From Dimorphilus gyrociliatus (taxonomy: Eukaryota > Animalia > Annelida): a stretch of DNA of 64,000 bases. The position numbers and the translations under genes were made by a program. Location: positions 1,667,713 to 1,731,712 of the forward strand of contig CAJFCJ010000004.1 in NCBI GenBank assembly GCA_904063045.1, given 5' to 3'. Below the pieces are notes generated by a model, which was not told where the DNA came from, did not search any database, and saw nothing but the letters and a program-made list of their open reading frames with translations. The number at the start of each line of letters is the position of its first letter. Positions within the stretch are counted from its first letter, which is position 1. This document shows positions 1,039-31,064 of the stretch, piece by piece.

Positions 1039-3722
1039 ATGGATCACGATCGACTAGTTAACAAATTAATGGAAATATGCGACGATTACGAGGAAGGTTA
1101 GTGACATATTTGATTTTTTTTTATAAAAAAGGGATCGTACCCTATCCATTGTCACCATCGACACGTTTTGGATTGTGGAAGATAAAAAAAAGAGGGAGAA
1201 CGAGACAGCTGGCAACGAGAAATTTTTTCACCAATCTCGGCGGGAGGTTGAGAAAGGAATGTGACACGACTTTTACGCATATACCCCCAAAACACTGCTT
1301 AGGACCCGACTCAACGCAAAAATTTCCACTTTACAGTGTCATGGCGAACTGACACCAATTCAAAAAACGCAAGAACGAGTTTGAACGCGAGGATTAGCGT
1401 TTTAACATTTAATAAATAGTAGTACCGAGTTAATCTCTTCTTTTTAACAAGTTCCGACAGTTGGTCGTAGAGATAGTTCTTATTGATAAACCCCCCTAAG
1501 GCACCTGCCCTATTTACTTTTCGTAGAATGGAATAACAAAGTTGGGTATATAGACATATATAGTACATAAAATCGCCCACTATATAGATAATAACGTATA
1601 TACTATATGCCAAATAGCCCTTTTATTTCGTTTATAAAGGGTTTATTGTTTGAAAATATGATTTTTAGACTGAATAGAAAGAAAACATATCAGTATTTAG
1701 TATAAAATGCATATAGATAGATATATAGTATCTATATAAGTATGTGAAGCATTTTTTTAAGTATATTTATAGAAAAGAAATAGGATTAAGATGTTGAGAA
1801 ATATTTTCAAGAGAAAGTAAACCCTTTGGGCGGAGTAGGAAATTCGTCTCGATTCTCAGACAGATACGCCTCTAAGTTTGTATATTTGTACAAGGAGTTA
1901 GATTAGTCCACTCGTTCGCTAAACATCTGTTCAGAAATCGTGACGTTTGAATGGCGTCGAGTTGTATGAGAACATTAGGAGGTCGTGCGAAAGGAGTATA
2001 CGACAGAAAATATAATAAGAGAAAAAGAATCTGGGGCCTATAGACTCGAGGCGTTTCTTAAAGATACATATCAGTTTCGACCCTTCATCACCGTATTCAA
2101 TGACATAATTATACTGAAGAATAGATTCACATAGCTATCCCGTAGAGAAAACTGTCCGACCTCTGACACGCTAATTAATTATTTTTTCTTTTCTTCATTT
2201 TTCCCATTCTAGCGGATGAACGCTTTCGCCCATCAAGCCAACTCTACCAACCTTACAATGGTCAAATACAGTTAGCCATCTACGTGAATTCGGGCTTGAT
2301 AACTGTTCATAGTGAGTATTCATTTCCCTCTGCTTCCCCCTTCCTGTACTAATTTAACACCTTTTTTACTTAGTAATTGAAGGGAAGAATTTAAATCCTA
2401 CTAATGCAAACGAACCGTGCCATTCTTTCGTTCAGGTAAAAATTTATTTCTTCCTCTACGGCTTTTGTAGTCATTGTTCAAGACTAGGCAATAAAACCTG
2501 CTAATTATCGCTTTTACGTATAAAAGCCGCTAAAAGACGCCGCCGTCGCATGACGTCACAGTTCTCACAAAAAGCGTTGAAGGGAAAGAAAAATACGGCC
2601 TCTGTTGCCCTTTACCCTTCTGCGTTCTATCTTGACCTATTGTTCAGTCTGCGGGTGTATTCTAAGCGATTTTTCGCTTAGAAATCCTCCCATTTTTCCA
2701 TTTTATTTCATTTCTAACCTATGTTAACCCATGCTCAAATAAAAAATAGGTCAATCTGGCGCCGGATCGGGGTGGGAGGACGACCTGTAGAACGGAAACG
2801 ATTTACTGCAACCGCTGTCCCGTTTACGATGAAAAATTCTCATTGTAAGTTCATTTTTTTCTCACCTTTCGTCACCTATGTGTCATTAATCTCTATCTTA
2901 TTCTCCTTTGGCAAATCGTAGTGAACTCCTGGAAGGCGACGAGCGCAAAAGGGTTATTATAGCTGTATGGCAAACTCATTACGTTGATGCAAGGTAGAGT
3001 ATTGACTCCAAAAGATAAATATAGATTAATCTAATTATCCAATGCTATTTTCCCGCTCTTCGTAGGTATGATGAATTTCTTGGATGTACGTCATTTGGTG
3101 TCAAAAGTATTATTGATGGGAAGAAAACTGTGGACGGCTGGTACTATTTGTTAACACAAGATGTGGGCATAAGGAAACACTTGAGAGCGTCAAAGAAAAA
3201 AAATCAATTACGCAGAGAACTTAGCTCCGTCGATTTATCTTCTAGTCTCTTGCAATCCGAACAATCAACTTGGCTTGAATCAAAAACGGTAACGCCATCT
3301 AGCGGATTTTTAGAACACATAGTATTTTCACTAAAATCCTTTATTAACTTTGTCCAATTACAGCTACTGTTAAAAAGAGATAATAGTGGTTATGGTTTTA
3401 CAATAACTGGTAAATCTCCAGCAAGAGTTTGTAAAGTTGATAAAGGTTCTCAAGCAATTTTGGCTGGCCTACAATGCAACGATGTGATAATTCGCTTAGA
3501 TAATATAAACGTTTCAAAATTATCTGCAGACGCAGTAGTTCGACTAATTAGGTAAAGTTTTTTTAATTGAGGTTAAAAGTTTAATAATCTATTAATAACA
3601 TAATTTTATTTAACAAAAAAAAAAACAGAAATTGTCCTCATTACATGGTTTTGGAAATACAAAGGTTACGTCAACCAGAATTATCATTTCAAAAGGAAAA
3701 TATCTTTCCGCTTCATTTGTAA
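1039..3722 (+). CDS. C2 + PDZ domain protein (RGS3 N-terminus / PsGEF-like), spliced
   Basis: Manually joined exons ~1039-1096 (MDHDRLVNKLMEICDDYEE; tentative), 2213-2311, ~2372-2435, ~2746-2846, ~2922-2993, ~3066-3551, 3629-3722. They give a C2 domain (IQLAIYVNSGLITVHIIEGKNL...CPVYDEKFSF...FLGCTSFGVKSIIDGKKTVDGWYYLLTQDVGIRKHL, like RGS3 GCMSFGVKSLL...GWYYLL) and a PDZ domain (GYGFTITGKSPARVCKVDKGSQAILAGLQCNDVIIRLD). Stop at 3720-3722. Confidence 0.8.
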
Positions 3723-9707: not shown

Positions 9708-10689
9708 ACAATTCTTAATTTGTTGTTGTTTATTTTTTTTAACACCATGATACATCTAAAACTGATTTCCCTTCCCATAAGTGTTTTTGTTTTTATTAAG
9801 TTTTAAGTTAACTTTTATATGAGATAGATGGCGCTGTAATACTTGTCATATGGCGCCACCTGTAAATGAGCTTAAAAAATGATTGACATATGTAGATGAA
9901 GCATTTTCAGAATATTTTATAAAAAATTTACCTCTTTATACAATAACGTATTCGGATATCTAGTAGCTTCCGGCCATTCGACTTTGTTATTTTATCGTTG
10001 AAAGACGCGTAACGATAACGTATCCCATATGTTTGTCAAACTGGGTATTGTTTTCGAATAGGATAGTATTTACAGTCTACAATTTGCGTTATTTCGCCAA
10101 GGGTACACAAGAGAGTGCTGACATTCATACATTTGCGTATAAACCTTTACTACAGTAAATATTGCACATAATTACATGTATTTTATCACACAATCTTTAT
10201 ATTTATACTAAATATAGCACAGTATAGAAAGGTTTATATATATATACTGTATTTATTATAAATATATAAATAATACATATTGTGTGTACATATTTGTAGA
10301 TTTTAGTATATGTGTTTGTATGTATGTGTGGTGGAGTTTATGCTATTTACACAATCATTTTATATTTGGGCAGTCAGTTTTTCGGTTAACATAAGTTAAT
10401 AAACAAATATTTTTAACTTCTAAAAAGTAGATGACGTAAAATGTATTTAAACGGGGAAACCTAAGCCCGTCTTTCTCTCTCTATTTAGATTCTTATGTCG
10501 ATGTCTTTCTTCTTTTCCTTTTTTCTTTGACTTCTATGACCTGAGAGAGCTAACAAAAACGACTATAAAAACACTTTAATTTATAAACAGAATAATTTCC
10601 GGCTTCCAGGCCTACCTCAATCTTTGGCAAATTTCCCAACCATAGGTCATTCGCATTGATCAAGGGCACGCGACGCCTTGGTAAAATCT

Positions 10690-11110
10690 TTATGGATTTG
10701 GCGGGCCAGCGCATGCGCATTGTTTTATAGGCCTTTGGCATATCAAAAAGCCTTATTTGGGATTTGGCGCGCAAAAATAGTTAATTGTAAACATCACGTG
10801 ACTCATGAATGTGCTCTGCTGACGTAGTACGTTGACACTGCCGGCCGGCAAAAACAACTTTTTCCAAAACAAGGCTGTTTACGGGTAAGAGAAAATTATT
10901 TGTGAATGACAAATGATTAGACGCCCTAACAAAGAAAGAAACGAATGGTATTTGTATTTCAATCAAGAGTTAAAAGAACGCCGATTTTTCAGAGCTTTCC
11001 GCTGAAACGTGACGTCACATTTTTACCGAATAAACAATACGCTGCTTACTCACCTGTCAGTCATTTCGTTGCACGAATCAGGAGGAAGGCTCCGCCCACA
11101 TCGGAAGATA
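10690..11110 (+). promoter_or_regulatory. TIS11 upstream promoter motif cluster
   Basis: NRF1-like GCGCATGCGC 10709-10718, CArG box CCTTATTTGG 10751-10760, E2F-like TTTGGCGC 10763-10770, CACGTG ~10795, full CRE TGACGTCA 11010-11017, GC box ~11090. Confidence 0.55.
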
Positions 11111-25940: not shown

Positions 25941-28900
25941 ATGGCTGCAGCGCGCGCTGTAAATTCTGAACAAATTGAGTTGCAGTTTCAAGAAACATTA
26001 GTTAGTTAAGACAACACTTTATCCCCGTCTAATTTATATCCTTCAAATTAGTGTATACAATATCCTTGTTTGATAATTGTGTCTTATCCCAAACTCCCCC
26101 GTTCAAAGTTCCGCCTTAAACTGTATTAATTTTCAGACTGCAGGTCAATGGGTTCCAGAACCATTGTCTACTTTTCCAAGTCATGATGAATCAAAAGCCT
26201 CTATCGAATCATCAGTAACGCCTAAGAGTGCAAAACAAAATAGACTATCCAGTTGTCGTTGTACGTATAGATTATCAATTAAAATTTAGGAGAGGCAGGT
26301 GATAAAAAGATGAAGAGGAAGGAGAGAGAGATTAAAAAGATACCCTTTTCTTTCTTTACTTAATTGGTTCAATTTATTTTTCTTTATTTAAGATATGTGC
26401 GGAAGATGTATACGTAAAACTTTGCAATTTATTGGGGATGAATGGATTCAATTGACTCTTTTGGGCGTTATAATGGCACTACTAAGTTTCTTAATGGACT
26501 ATGTTATAGAGAAAAGTCTTGACGGTTATTTTCTTTGATTAAGATTAAATAGATAGTCTACTTTGAAGAGTTATAGATGAACTTATAAAGAGAAATTTTC
26601 TCGTTCTCTCTTTAAGTGGAATAGTTAAACTACTAGTATCAATAATTCATATCATATATCCCTTATCCAATCTACTTAACTCTAAAATTTCATACTTATA
26701 ATTCAATATAAGAATAATTTTGTCAACAGCTCGGCACTGGCTTTACAATAAAACCGAATTTTCCATTCCATTACAATTTTTTACGTGGGTCATCTTTCCT
26801 GTGATATTTATAAATTTTTCTACTGGCTTCGTCCACATTGTTGGTCCCAGTGCAGTTGGTTTGTTGACCTTTTTCCTATATTAATAAAAAACACAAAAGC
26901 ATATATATATACAGTATATATAAATTTATATATAAATATATATTTATATACTGAATTTAATACTCCCAAATTATTATCTAGGTTCCGGTATACCGGAAAT
27001 GAAGACTATATTACGTGGGGTAGTGCTGAAGAAATATTTATCATTTAGAACTTTAATATCAAAAATGGTTGGTCTAGTAGCTTCTATCGGAAGCGGCCTT
27101 TCAATTGGGAAGGAAGTAAGCATAAATTTGAAGGATAAATTGTAGTTTTCTTAAACAAAGAATACTATCAAGCAAACAACTTTCTTTAATGCACGACTTA
27201 TTCATAGTTAATGTTGTTTTGCTCTAGATTATATTCTTGATAAATTGTCAGAAAAGATTTATATGCTCAACCATCTGCGAATACTTTCTTCTTTACTGTC
27301 TATCTTTCTTTAGGGTCCTTTTGTCCATATTGCCAGTATCACAGCAAGATTGTTATGTAAATATGTCCGATCGACCAAAGGGAAATTTCTGGTATATATT
27401 TATATAATATTAGATAAACACTTTAAATCAAATAGCCTGTTCTCGCTTTCTTTTAGAAAAAAGATACAAACATGGAATTGTTAGCGGCAGCTTGTGCTGT
27501 TGGTGTTGCTAGTACTTTTGCAGCTCCTATTGGAGGTAATTCAATGAAAAAAACTACTAATTAAATAGAATAATTCTAAATATATCGTCTCTAAATATAG
27601 AATCATACTTTTTCAATATTGAAAAATTACTTTAACAAGTGCTTTCACTAATTTCTTTCTTTATCATATTCTTCTAGGTGTTCTGTTCAGTATAGAAGTC
27701 ACAGCTACGTATTTTGCAGTTAGTAATTATTGGCGTGGATTTTATTCAGCCGTTTGCGGTGCTCTAGTCTTCCGATTATTAGGTGTCTGGTTTAGAAACG
27801 AAGAAACCATTACAGCTTTATTTAAAACTGATTTAAGAACAAACATTCCATTCGACCCCTTAGAATTGGTTGTCTTTGCTGGTATCGGGTAAATAGAGCC
27901 AATTTTCAATCATATTTTCAATATTTTAAAGACGTATTTTGCAGTGTTACTAGTGGTTTGGCAGGAGCCCTCTTCGTTTTCCTTCACAGGACTATTATTG
28001 AATTTATTAGAAGTCAAAGAAGCGTAACAAAGTTTATTACTAGCCAGTAAAAGCTATTATTAAATTATTATTACCTAATGAATATTAATATTTAATAATT
28101 ATTTATTTATTGTATAACTTTCAGGCGCTTTTTATTTCCAACTCTAGTTGCTGTCTTTATTTGCTCATTAACATATCCTAAAGGATTGGGAAAGTATATG
28201 TCTGGCATTCTTACAAATAGAGAAGCTGTTAATCAATTATTCTCGTAAGTTAATTAGTTAAATGAGGTATGTGATTGTTAAAAGAAGCGTGTTTTTTTTT
28301 TAATAGTAATATAAGTTGGACTAAGGGGCAGTCTGATGTGCCAGAACAGGATGATATCATTTCAGGGTGGAAAGGTCCAAATGACAATATTTATTTAACT
28401 CTGTCACTTTTTATCTTAATGAGGGTGAGAATTGAACATGTTAACATAAACTGAAAAACAGATAACAGCTATTGTTTCAATCTATCATCTAGTTCTGGAT
28501 GTCAGCTTTATCTATTACACTACCCGTTCCAGCTGGAGTTTTTATGCCAGTTTTTACTTTAGGAGCTGCTTACGGTCGTTTAATAGGAGAGTCTATGGCT
28601 GCCTGGTTTCCCAACGGTGTTTCTAACGTTGATAATGCATTAGTTGTACCGGCTGGTTACGCTATAGTTGGTATGGCGTTTACTATTATTTCTGTTACCT
28701 TAGCTTTCCATTGTATACTATAATAGTCTTTTTGTTATTGTTTATCTTTTAAACAGGTGCAGCATCATTTGCCGGTGCGGTAACACATACTGTATCAACA
28801 TCAGTTATTGTTTTTGAGTTAACCGGTCATCTTGGTCACATTCTTCCCTGTGTGGTATGTATGTCAAAAGAAAACAATATCCAATTACTTAAACTATGGC

Positions 28901-31064
28901 CTTGTATCAAATCTTCTTTCTATTAATTTGTATCATTAAAATCTTTCGAGGTGTCAGTTTTATTGGCCAACGCTGTAGCCCAGAAATTCGAAGATTCAGT
29001 CTATAATATGATAATAGCGACTAATAAGTTACCTAGTTTACCGTATTTGGTAAATGTGCGGGAAGTATTTAAGTAGGTCAATCAATCAGTTCGCTTTAGT
29101 CCATTGTTAATTTAATTTCACTACCACCTCTTGTTTCATTTGTTTTAATATTCTTTTACGATTGTGTGTAATTTATTTATTAAACGAGATTTCCCTAATT
29201 GGACATTTTTTTTGCTGGTTTCGCTTTATCAAAGAGTGTGTGCAGTTTAGAATTAGATTTGAAAAGAATATGGTTTTGTAGAGAAAATACTTTTGAGAAT
29301 ATACGCAAGACCAATGATTAGCTTCTTTAATGCTCTATATCTTTAGGGAGAATTCTATAGGAGAAAAATTATGAATTATTCTTTTTTTCAAAGATTCATA
29401 AAGAAAATAGTGTTCCTCCTTTGTCATCCTTTTTCACCTTCTCTCTTGTTTAGGCGAGAGAGGGAGTGAAAGAAAGAAAGGAAGAACGAGCAAATGGGAG
29501 ACGAGTTCTCTTCTAATAAGAGAAAGTACTTTCTATAACGATAAAGATAGATTGATCTCAATCTGAAATTATGAATATATGTGACACCATAAGGAAATCA
29601 TGGAAAAAAAGCAATTATTCATTATTCTCCTATTTCTTCTTACAGATCAGCGTTCTCGTTGCGAATAGCATAAGTCATCGATTCGCTCCGAATATTTATG
29701 ACAGCTTTATCTATATTAAACGCCTACCTTATTTACCAGATTTGATTGAATCTGATGAAAAGTATAAATTTTTGCTTCTTTCTTACTATTCAATTCTTTA
29801 AATGGTCTTCGGAAAGATAAGAGAGAAAGAAAGGAAGAGAGAGTTCGAAATTATCTTAAAAGGAGAGACGGGTTGGGGGGTAACGAATGGGGTACTTTAC
29901 CAGATGTAAATAACTAATTTTACATAAAAAAAGAGGATACTTATACCCTAATTGGTAAATAAGAGATCTGTAGAAAACATCTAAGATACTTACTTTCTCT
30001 CATATCTACGTTAGTGTTATTAGCAGACTTTAGAGTCGTCTCTTATCTCTTAATAGAGGTAATTCTAACCTTGCGCGGTATACTTTATAGGGCGAAAGAA
30101 ACAACTGCTGAAGAATTTATGGTTAAGGATCCTAATTTGATATATATCACAAAACGTATCTCTTACAATCGATTACAAGACTTCTTAAATCGATATGGCT
30201 TCTTATCTTTCCCAGTGGTTGATAAAGAAGGTAGCATCTTTATTCTGTCAACCTATTTATTTCAGTTTGTTTAATTTATCCATCTAGATTCCAGAATATT
30301 TGTTGGATCTATTGGAAGATCTGAATTAACTAATAATTTACATAATAATCCAATAATTTCCGGGTAAATTGGGATTTTATCAATTTTAATTTTGCGTAAT
30401 AATAGCCTTTTATCAACTAATTTATAACTAATTAACAGAGAAAGAGAAGTAGAGGAAGAAGATAACGGAGGACAAGAAGAAGAAGAAGAAAAAGTAATTA
30501 TTGCCGATTATGAAACAATTACCGGAATTAATGAAACGGAAATGGTAGATACTGTAAGATAAATTATTCTTTTAATCGTTTATATTTTCCTGTAATTATT
30601 AATTTGGTTATCTTTGTGTTTTGATTTGCCTTTTATAAAATAAATAAGGCTTGCTTAGTAGACGACAATATTAAAACTACGAAGAAGAAATATAAGAAAA
30701 GTTTGTATACTGTTGTAAAAATACCATATAAAAACCAGAAGTAATGTTACTTATTATTTCAATAGAAAAGAAAAATAAGCATAGAAAAGATTCATCGGAT
30801 TTTATCGAGATAAATGACGAAGATATTGATCCTTCTCCTTTTCAACTGGTGCAAAAAACTACATTAGCTAAAGTAAATATATTAATCTTATTAACTTTTT
30901 CTAATAAATATTAATAATTTATTAATTTTATTAAGGTACATTGGTTTTTCTCCATACTTAGCATAAAATATGCATATATTACTTCAAGTGGAAAATTGGT
31001 TGGGGTAATAGCTTTAAAAGATATTTGTAAAGCTATAAATGGAATAAAAGATGAGAAAAATTAA
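25941..31064 (+). CDS. CLCN2: ClC-2-type voltage-gated chloride channel, multi-exon, with an alternative exon pair
   Basis: Start [20 protein letters not shown]; [27 protein letters not shown]|[15 protein letters not shown] (channel-type Val), GVFMP, two CBS domains, stop 31062-31064. Alternative exons 28951-29072 and 29646-29761. Confidence 0.93.

Follow-up and report, generated by a model that had tools for sequence, protein, structure and literature searches.

A candidate pair of mutually exclusive exons for pore helix R in a ClC-2-like chloride channel gene of the annelid Dimorphilus gyrociliatus

Mutually exclusive tandem exon pairs are a well-known feature of ion-channel genes, and genes of the ClC-2 type are also known to give rise to variant proteins; the products clh-3a and clh-3b of C. 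elegans, for example, differ at their N- and C-termini. Substitutions between tandemly duplicated exons have been the subject of several reviews (PMC8373072, PMC9741552, PMC9013439, PMC5740500), and a passage in PMC3245913, citing Flores et al. 2006, describes Drosophila ClC-a as having four cassette exons grouped in its cytoplasmic region. The effects of altered charge on helix R of a CLC channel have been explored with mutants of ClC-0, including D513C and a series of replacements at K519 (PMC2229543, PMC2229544, PMC2229583). As to the control of exon choice, the docking-site and selector mechanism of Dscam exon 6 and 14-3-3 zeta is discussed in PMC6071210. In the papers covered by full-text searches, alternative exons for a pore helix are not reported for any CLC protein; the pair presented here would exchange one such helix.

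The window analysed in this study is a stretch of 64,000 nucleotides from D. gyrociliatus (assembly GCA_904063045.1, contig CAJFCJ010000004.1, positions 1,667,713 to 1,731,712 of the forward strand), and the features of the locus are collected in Table 1. When the exon translations of its channel gene were searched singly against Pfam, four of them matched Voltage_CLC (PF00654) above the Pfam cut-off, with E-values from 3e-9 to 1e-5. The last exon gave a weak match to the CBS domain (PF00571) that lies below the cut-off (E 0.009), and the CBS1 exon aligns with its orthologues without a match to the Pfam CBS model in this exon-by-exon search. Alignments of 600-800 residues with ClC-2 orthologues show 42-49% identity; an octopus ClC-2 is among the best long matches (48% over 809 aligned residues), and others are named chloride channel protein 2. 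The motif with the gating glutamate, GKE|GP, is split between two exons, the one ending near 27130 and the next starting near 27314. With Voltage_CLC matches, ClC-2 orthologues as its closest relatives, and both the gating glutamate and the central tyrosine in place, the gene qualifies on its sequence as a member of the ClC-1/2/K type. Helix-R copies of the ClC-2 type are found in the 77.9-Mb genome only in the two exons discussed below, termed A and B, and their host is the only recognisable ClC-1/2-type chloride channel gene of this worm.

Table 1. Features of the ClC-2-like locus, with positions in the window and nucleotide identity to a related worm
Feature	Position	Strand	Identity	Details
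ClC-1/2/K-type (ClC-2-like) chloride channel gene	26392..31061	+		Approximate coding extent; Pfam Voltage_CLC matches, orthologue alignment
Constitutive upstream exon	28758..28854	+	89%	From helix P into the start of helix Q; phase 0 at its 3' end
Intron between upstream exon and A			66%	
Exon A, divergent	28951..29072	+	67%	End of helix Q, Q-R loop, helix R, start of linker; 122 nt, phase 0 to 2
Conserved stretch directly 3' of the donor of A	29073..29099	+	~25/27	Conservation collapses thereafter
Intron between A and B			53%	
Exon B, near-canonical	29646..29761	+	87%	Copy of the same segment as A; 116 nt, phase 0 to 2
Purine-rich arm	29815..29833	+		~55 nt downstream of exon B; can pair with 29989-30007 (inverted repeat I2, 19 nt, 89% complementary)
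Conserved non-coding block	29861..30075	+		Lies in the intron that follows exon B; includes the pyrimidine-rich arm 29989-30007
Constitutive downstream exon	30091..30230	+	83%	Encodes the linker and the beginning of CBS1; the AA| codon of A or B is completed by its first base

The two homologous exons had been recognised in a preliminary description of this DNA, and their boundaries, translations and AG/GT splice sites were all confirmed. Exon A encodes an open segment of 40 residues and exon B one of 38; the two proteins align without gaps over 38 residues at 37% identity (E 7e-10). Searched individually against solved structures, both exons align best with human ClC-2 (residues 536-568) and ClC-1 (residues 561-593), the match being stronger for exon B (27.8 bits) than for exon A (21.3 bits). 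The central tyrosine, which had been reported as kept in both exons, aligns in each of them with human ClC-2 Y553, which is the TyrC of the inner gate in the cryoEM study (PMC10942593). The designation of these exons as encoding helix R likewise stands as far as the helix and its tyrosine are concerned, with the refinement that each takes in, besides helix R, the C-terminal half of helix Q and the Q-R loop on one side and the beginning of the CBS1 linker on the other. Nucleotide identity between A and B at the first, second and third codon positions amounts to 0.42, 0.63 and 0.34, respectively, indicating that the duplication is old and that both copies have been retained as coding sequence.

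Both exons run from phase 0 to phase 2, as originally proposed, and when the exons are joined locally the frame remains open with A alone or with B alone. Joining A to B places a stop after 10 codons of B, and skipping both exons leads to stops immediately. The acceptor of exon A (cgAG|GTG) is weak: its pyrimidine tract is poor and position -3 is a G. At the other end of exon A stands the donor AA|GTAGGT; exon B has an acceptor with a strong pyrimidine tract (acAG|ATC) and a weak donor (AA|GTATAA). The strongest two of these four sites are the donor of A and the acceptor of B. The GAG acceptor of exon A, singled out earlier as unusual, is real, and the related worm also has a G at -3. The intron between A and B measures 573 nt and has no U12-type donor (RTATCCTT); exclusivity appears to depend on the reading frame alone, both exons being 3n+2 in length, and not on a short intron or on U2/U12 incompatibility.

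We consider it probable, at roughly three chances in four, that A and B constitute a tandem-duplicated, mutually exclusive pair supplying a canonical (B) and a divergent (A) version of the pore helix, with altered pore-lining charges in the latter. Each mRNA would then take one of the two exons between the constitutive upstream and downstream exons, and messages with both or neither would shift frame, run into early stops and give no channel, probably being degraded by nonsense-mediated decay (NMD). A near-canonical channel would come from exon B, which has the strong acceptor. Exon A, whose weak gAG acceptor is kept in the related worm, would probably need an activator, and its use is likely to be specific to certain cell types or conditions. 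The two predicted isoforms would differ only in about 40 residues, which reach from the end of helix Q through the Q-R loop and helix R into the beginning of the linker, and both would keep the chloride-coordinating tyrosine. In their adjacency, matching phases and intact splice sites, in the incompatibility of including both or neither, and in their selection and conservation, the two exons have, at the level of sequence, the properties of an exclusive pair. The original reading of the exons as mutually exclusive is strengthened in that both are coding, A evolves under purifying selection and is in frame only when it replaces B, and the same architecture recurs in Capitella. The analysis shows the homology, the frame logic, the purifying selection on A and the Capitella pair directly; how the messages are spliced, their removal by NMD, the regulation of the choice and its biophysical consequences are inferred.

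The evidence for selection comes from a related worm. An exhaustive search with a profile of A and B recovered a 48-residue ORF (P0006) that is 77% identical to A and 39% identical to B, and that is found on six Logan contigs from two studies, all six representing one identical genomic sequence. The longest contig of this worm (L005) is collinear with the ClC gene of the window; another of its contigs (L011) carries Illumina adapter sequence at positions 1-23. In L005 the orthologue of exon A (10022-10143) is 122 nt long, open and free of gaps, and keeps both splice sites, while the flanking introns contain many gaps; the orthologue of exon B lies at 10700-10815. Stops in orthologous copies of A, or the lack of such copies, had been named in advance as marks of a dead pseudo-exon and are not what is seen here; a dN/dS estimate had been named as a means of judging the exon. 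The Nei-Gojobori omega of exon A, which compares the window with this one related worm over the whole time since the species split, comes to 0.14 over the whole exon; codons 1-31, the helix part, give 0.067 and the last 9 codons 0.74. The corresponding value is 0.14 for exon B and 0.08 for the downstream exon, and the upstream exon has an identical protein, with all of its 10 changes synonymous. Third codon positions account for 22 of the 40 differences in exon A. At the same time pN is 0.23 in exon A versus 0.07 in exon B, such that the A protein evolves about three times faster.

These values were set against a neutral simulation of exon A, in which an equal number of substitutions was placed at random with the substitution spectrum of the introns in 20,000 runs. 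As few amino-acid changes as observed arose with P 0.0003 for the whole exon and in 0 of the 20,000 runs for codons 1-31, and only 16% of the neutrally mutated copies were still open, the genome having 34% G+C. From the open frame, the low omega and the simulation taken together, we reject the possibility that exon A has been a dead pseudo-exon through most of the period after the two worms diverged; judged from the two genomic sequences, it is maintained as a coding exon under purifying selection. About 12 nt before the acceptor of A and about 27 nt after its donor are also kept in the related worm, the rest of the introns having diverged, and the conserved stretch beyond the donor may represent an intronic splicing signal.

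A second instance of the architecture is found in Capitella teleta (sequence L012, KB304272.1), where two tandem helix-R copies occupy positions 3251-3360 (copy 1) and 3454-3572 (copy 2) of L012. Copy 1 is unannotated and lies upstream of the annotated copy 2 (gene model protein P0270); it is open and has AG/GT sites. The pair has the same upstream boundary (CCC TGT GTG|gt) and the same phases as in D. gyrociliatus, the copies measure 110 and 119 nt, both 3n+2, with an intron of 93 nt between them, and inclusion of both or neither likewise runs into stops. Their identity by codon position is 0.64/0.78/0.25, with the third position saturated and the first and second kept. The suggestion that such pairs might be sought in other annelid ClC-2 loci was thus rewarded in Capitella and not in Owenia, which has a single copy; a second helix-R copy is also absent from the loci of the nemertean Lineus, the limpet Lottia and the bryozoan Bugula, each with one copy. 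A tree of the exon copies, based on 38 columns, does not distinguish a common origin of A and Capitella copy 1 from separate ones.

Across about 117 ClC-2 orthologues, spanning molluscs, annelids, nemerteans, echinoderms, arthropods, cnidarians and chordates, there is one canonical helix R of the type QPS-YDSII-K-LPYLP. In five orthologues without the canonical motif, the second basic residue is replaced by Gly and the remainder is canonical. No helix-R variants were detected among about 180 sequences, comprising these orthologues and about 60 further isoforms; in the RefSeq and other isoform sets compared, from octopus, lampreys, shrimp, crayfish, Gordionus, Lineus and several molluscs, the differences lie outside helix R, which does not vary among the isoforms. 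One protein considered as a possible exon cluster (P0001, MetaClust UPI0006077CEC) was discarded, its three helix-R stretches being identical repeats indicative of a faulty model. Other blocks of this 906-residue ClC model are repeated too, and it looks like an artefact of assembly or gene modelling.

In terms of function, the differences between A and B can be read against the residues of ClC-0, in which D513, I515, I516, K519, P522 and Y523 correspond to Tyr+1, +3, +4, +7, +10 and +11. Cysteine accessibility places these residues on the pore face of helix R, and charges at 513 and 519 shape the electrostatic potential of the pore (PMC2229544), conductance being set by the charge at 519 (PMC2229543). 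Exon B keeps all of the pore-face positions. Exon A departs from residues that are invariant in the approximately 117 animal ClC-2 proteins, with Asp for Pro at Tyr-3, Asn for Asp at Tyr+1 and Met for Ser at Tyr+2, and retains the tyrosine itself along with the LP..P motif. Both worms have in exon A the Asn at Tyr+1, the Met at Tyr+2, Glu-Asp at Tyr-4/-3 and a single basic residue at Tyr+7/+8, which reads NK or KN in the two worms; Capitella copy 1 has Asn-Asp there. Loss of the K519 equivalent is ruled out as a defining feature of A by the Lys at Tyr+7 in exon A of the related worm. Over the segment from Tyr-4 to Tyr+14, the net charge of the upstream copy is 1-2 fewer positive than that of the downstream copy in all three species. 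Given that the charge at the pore-facing positions Tyr+1 and Tyr+7 sets conductance, rectification and fast-gate kinetics in ClC-0, isoform A would be expected to differ in permeation and gating. A difference in gating or selectivity, as suggested in the preliminary description, is predicted by analogy with ClC-0 mutagenesis; altered conductance, rectification or fast gating of isoform A can reasonably be inferred, as can a changed coupling to CBS1 by way of the different linker.

The measure of selection covers the whole time since the split and may be compatible with a recent loss of exon A use in D. gyrociliatus. Exon A would in that case be a relic that worked for most of this time and is now unspliced or spliced at the level of noise, with the gene making B only, and its weak acceptor, its faster evolution and its neutral-looking tail would all suit such a history. 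The searches of proteins and contigs, too, returned no transcript-derived sequence with A. Parts of the stretch occur in six sequencing runs, among them marine and coral metatranscriptomes with 8-13% of the sampled words, and neither the protein word search nor the metagenome scans with exon A and A-type peptides found spliced exon A, the scans also yielding no relative; for a stretch of the downstream exon the word search gave only a genomic ORF of the related worm. These blanks are uninformative, the word search having missed P0006 as well; this ORF shares about 12 five-residue words with the exon A query and is in the same collection, so that blanks from this search are weak evidence. Against a relic stand the 41 codons that remain open in a genome of 34% G+C, where few neutral copies would, the conservation of the splice sites and their immediate flanks amid otherwise diverged introns, and the strong third-position bias of the differences, and we regard it as quite unlikely. 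It is very improbable, in our estimate, that A is translated in a manner that is not exclusive, either as the truncated end of a channel lacking CBS domains or as a 'poison' exon included with B for NMD. Reading through the donor of A gives AAG TAG, an immediate stop that intron retention or intronic polyadenylation could expose, and the strength of the donor of A and the acceptor of B makes A-to-B splicing, with its stop after 10 codons, plausible. However, an in-frame stop of this kind follows any phase-2 exon with a consensus GTRAG donor and is therefore no sign of a terminal exon; ClC channels without CBS domains are, moreover, generally non-functional. A poison exon needs no protein constraint, whereas the helix-R part of A has an omega of 0.067 and keeps its tyrosine and LP..P motif, and the upstream copies, at 122, 122 and 110 nt, are all 3n+2, which is the requirement for joining the downstream exon.

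How the choice between A and B might be controlled is a separate matter, on which the intron downstream of B has some bearing. It contains a block of 215 nt that is 90% identical to its counterpart in the related worm (22 substitutions over 215 aligned positions), is better conserved than the synonymous sites of the exons and occurs as a single copy in the genome. A coding explanation was dismissed: the substitutions are spread 7/6/9 over the codon positions, and every frame contains stops in at least one species. Rfam has no convincing family for the block, and the Rfam matches in the low-complexity part of the intron between A and B were sub-threshold and attributed to chance. The fold of the block by itself is not exceptional, with 4 compensatory pairs among 68 predicted. 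Its pyrimidine-rich arm can form a duplex with the purine-rich arm beyond exon B, with a dG of -23.7 kcal/mol in the window, a value within the lowest 5% of 100 shuffles though not beyond their minimum. In the related worm the same duplex has a dG of -27.8 kcal/mol and beats all 100 shuffles, even with the purine arm diverged in sequence. The block may help to control the choice between A and B, and in structural terms it is possible that such a stem shortens the intron between B and the downstream exon and thereby helps the weak donor of B. Similar purine-rich GAAAG repeats occur downstream of A (29468-29490) and of B (29821-29843); they would fit a duplication unit consisting of an exon and its following intron, and being of low complexity may also be due to chance.

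A more elaborate control by competing RNA structures, of the Dscam and 14-3-3 zeta type, would have the conserved block serve as a docking site for two selectors, one after A and one after B. The conservation of the block and the better-than-shuffled pairing of its core downstream of B in both species accord with such a scheme, and in the window there is also a 13-nt match (I5) to the same core downstream of A. This match has no conserved equivalent: downstream of A the best duplex with the core reaches -17.9 in the window, where the controls average -17.6, and -13.3 in the related worm, where they average -17.3, and for the conserved 27 nt after the donor of A no significant pairing partner was found. 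Capitella, furthermore, has the exon pair but a downstream intron of 54 nt and no such block, and the purine- and pyrimidine-rich arms are sequence of low complexity. With a partner after B only and none after A, the two-selector model in its proper form is rejected, and competition of this type is, on balance, unlikely.

A broader scenario may be offered, with considerable reserve and as more doubtful than probable: the pair could have a single origin on the stem leading to the main annelid clade, later than the separation of the Owenia line, and have been kept for hundreds of millions of years as a switch from a canonical to a charge-altered CLC pore and back, with the 215-nt RNA block of dinophilids setting the choice through a stem that favours B. 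If true, a natural switch of pore helices would here be seen for the first time in a CLC protein, accompanied by a dedicated RNA control element. For the biophysics of CLC proteins, helix R and its tyrosine are intensively studied in relation to permeation and to the coupling of pore and CBS domains; the known splice variants all leave the CLC pore alone, and a natural pore-helix pair under selection would be a ready-made experiment on otherwise invariant residues. The Capitella gene model without its upstream copy suggests that the diversity of annelid ClC-2 is under-annotated. For the study of splicing, the locus would bring together an exclusive pair enforced by frame and a strongly conserved intronic element.

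The described systems with which the locus may be compared each resemble it in part. As in Dscam and 14-3-3 zeta, the most conserved non-coding sequence of the locus lies beside the exon pair and can pair near one variable exon; unlike them, only one of the two required selectors is found here, and the defining competition is not seen. In common with the ClC-0 mutants, exon A alters the equivalent of D513 (Asn in both worms) and those of the K519/K520 pair. Those were single laboratory mutations in a fish channel, whereas exon A changes about 25 residues at once, some of them in the Q-R loop and the linker, and therefore the net effect of exon A cannot be predicted from the single mutants. Drosophila ClC-a and C. 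elegans clh-3a/b likewise represent one ClC-2-type gene giving several differently regulated isoforms, but in their variants cytoplasmic segments are gained or lost and the pore stays the same, whereas the annelid pair would substitute a helix that lines it. The closest resemblance in architecture is to the exclusive exons of other channels, such as 5N/5A of vertebrate SCN genes, 8/8a of CACNA1C and those of Drosophila para and slo, which like A and B are adjacent and homologous, of nearly equal length and of equal phase. As would be the case in the annelids, one exon is used per message in these pairs and the isoforms are identical outside one structurally equivalent segment; here as there, selection acts on both copies of an old duplication. 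What sets the annelid pair apart from them is its host, a CLC channel, and the segment exchanged, which is helix R with the chloride-binding tyrosine.
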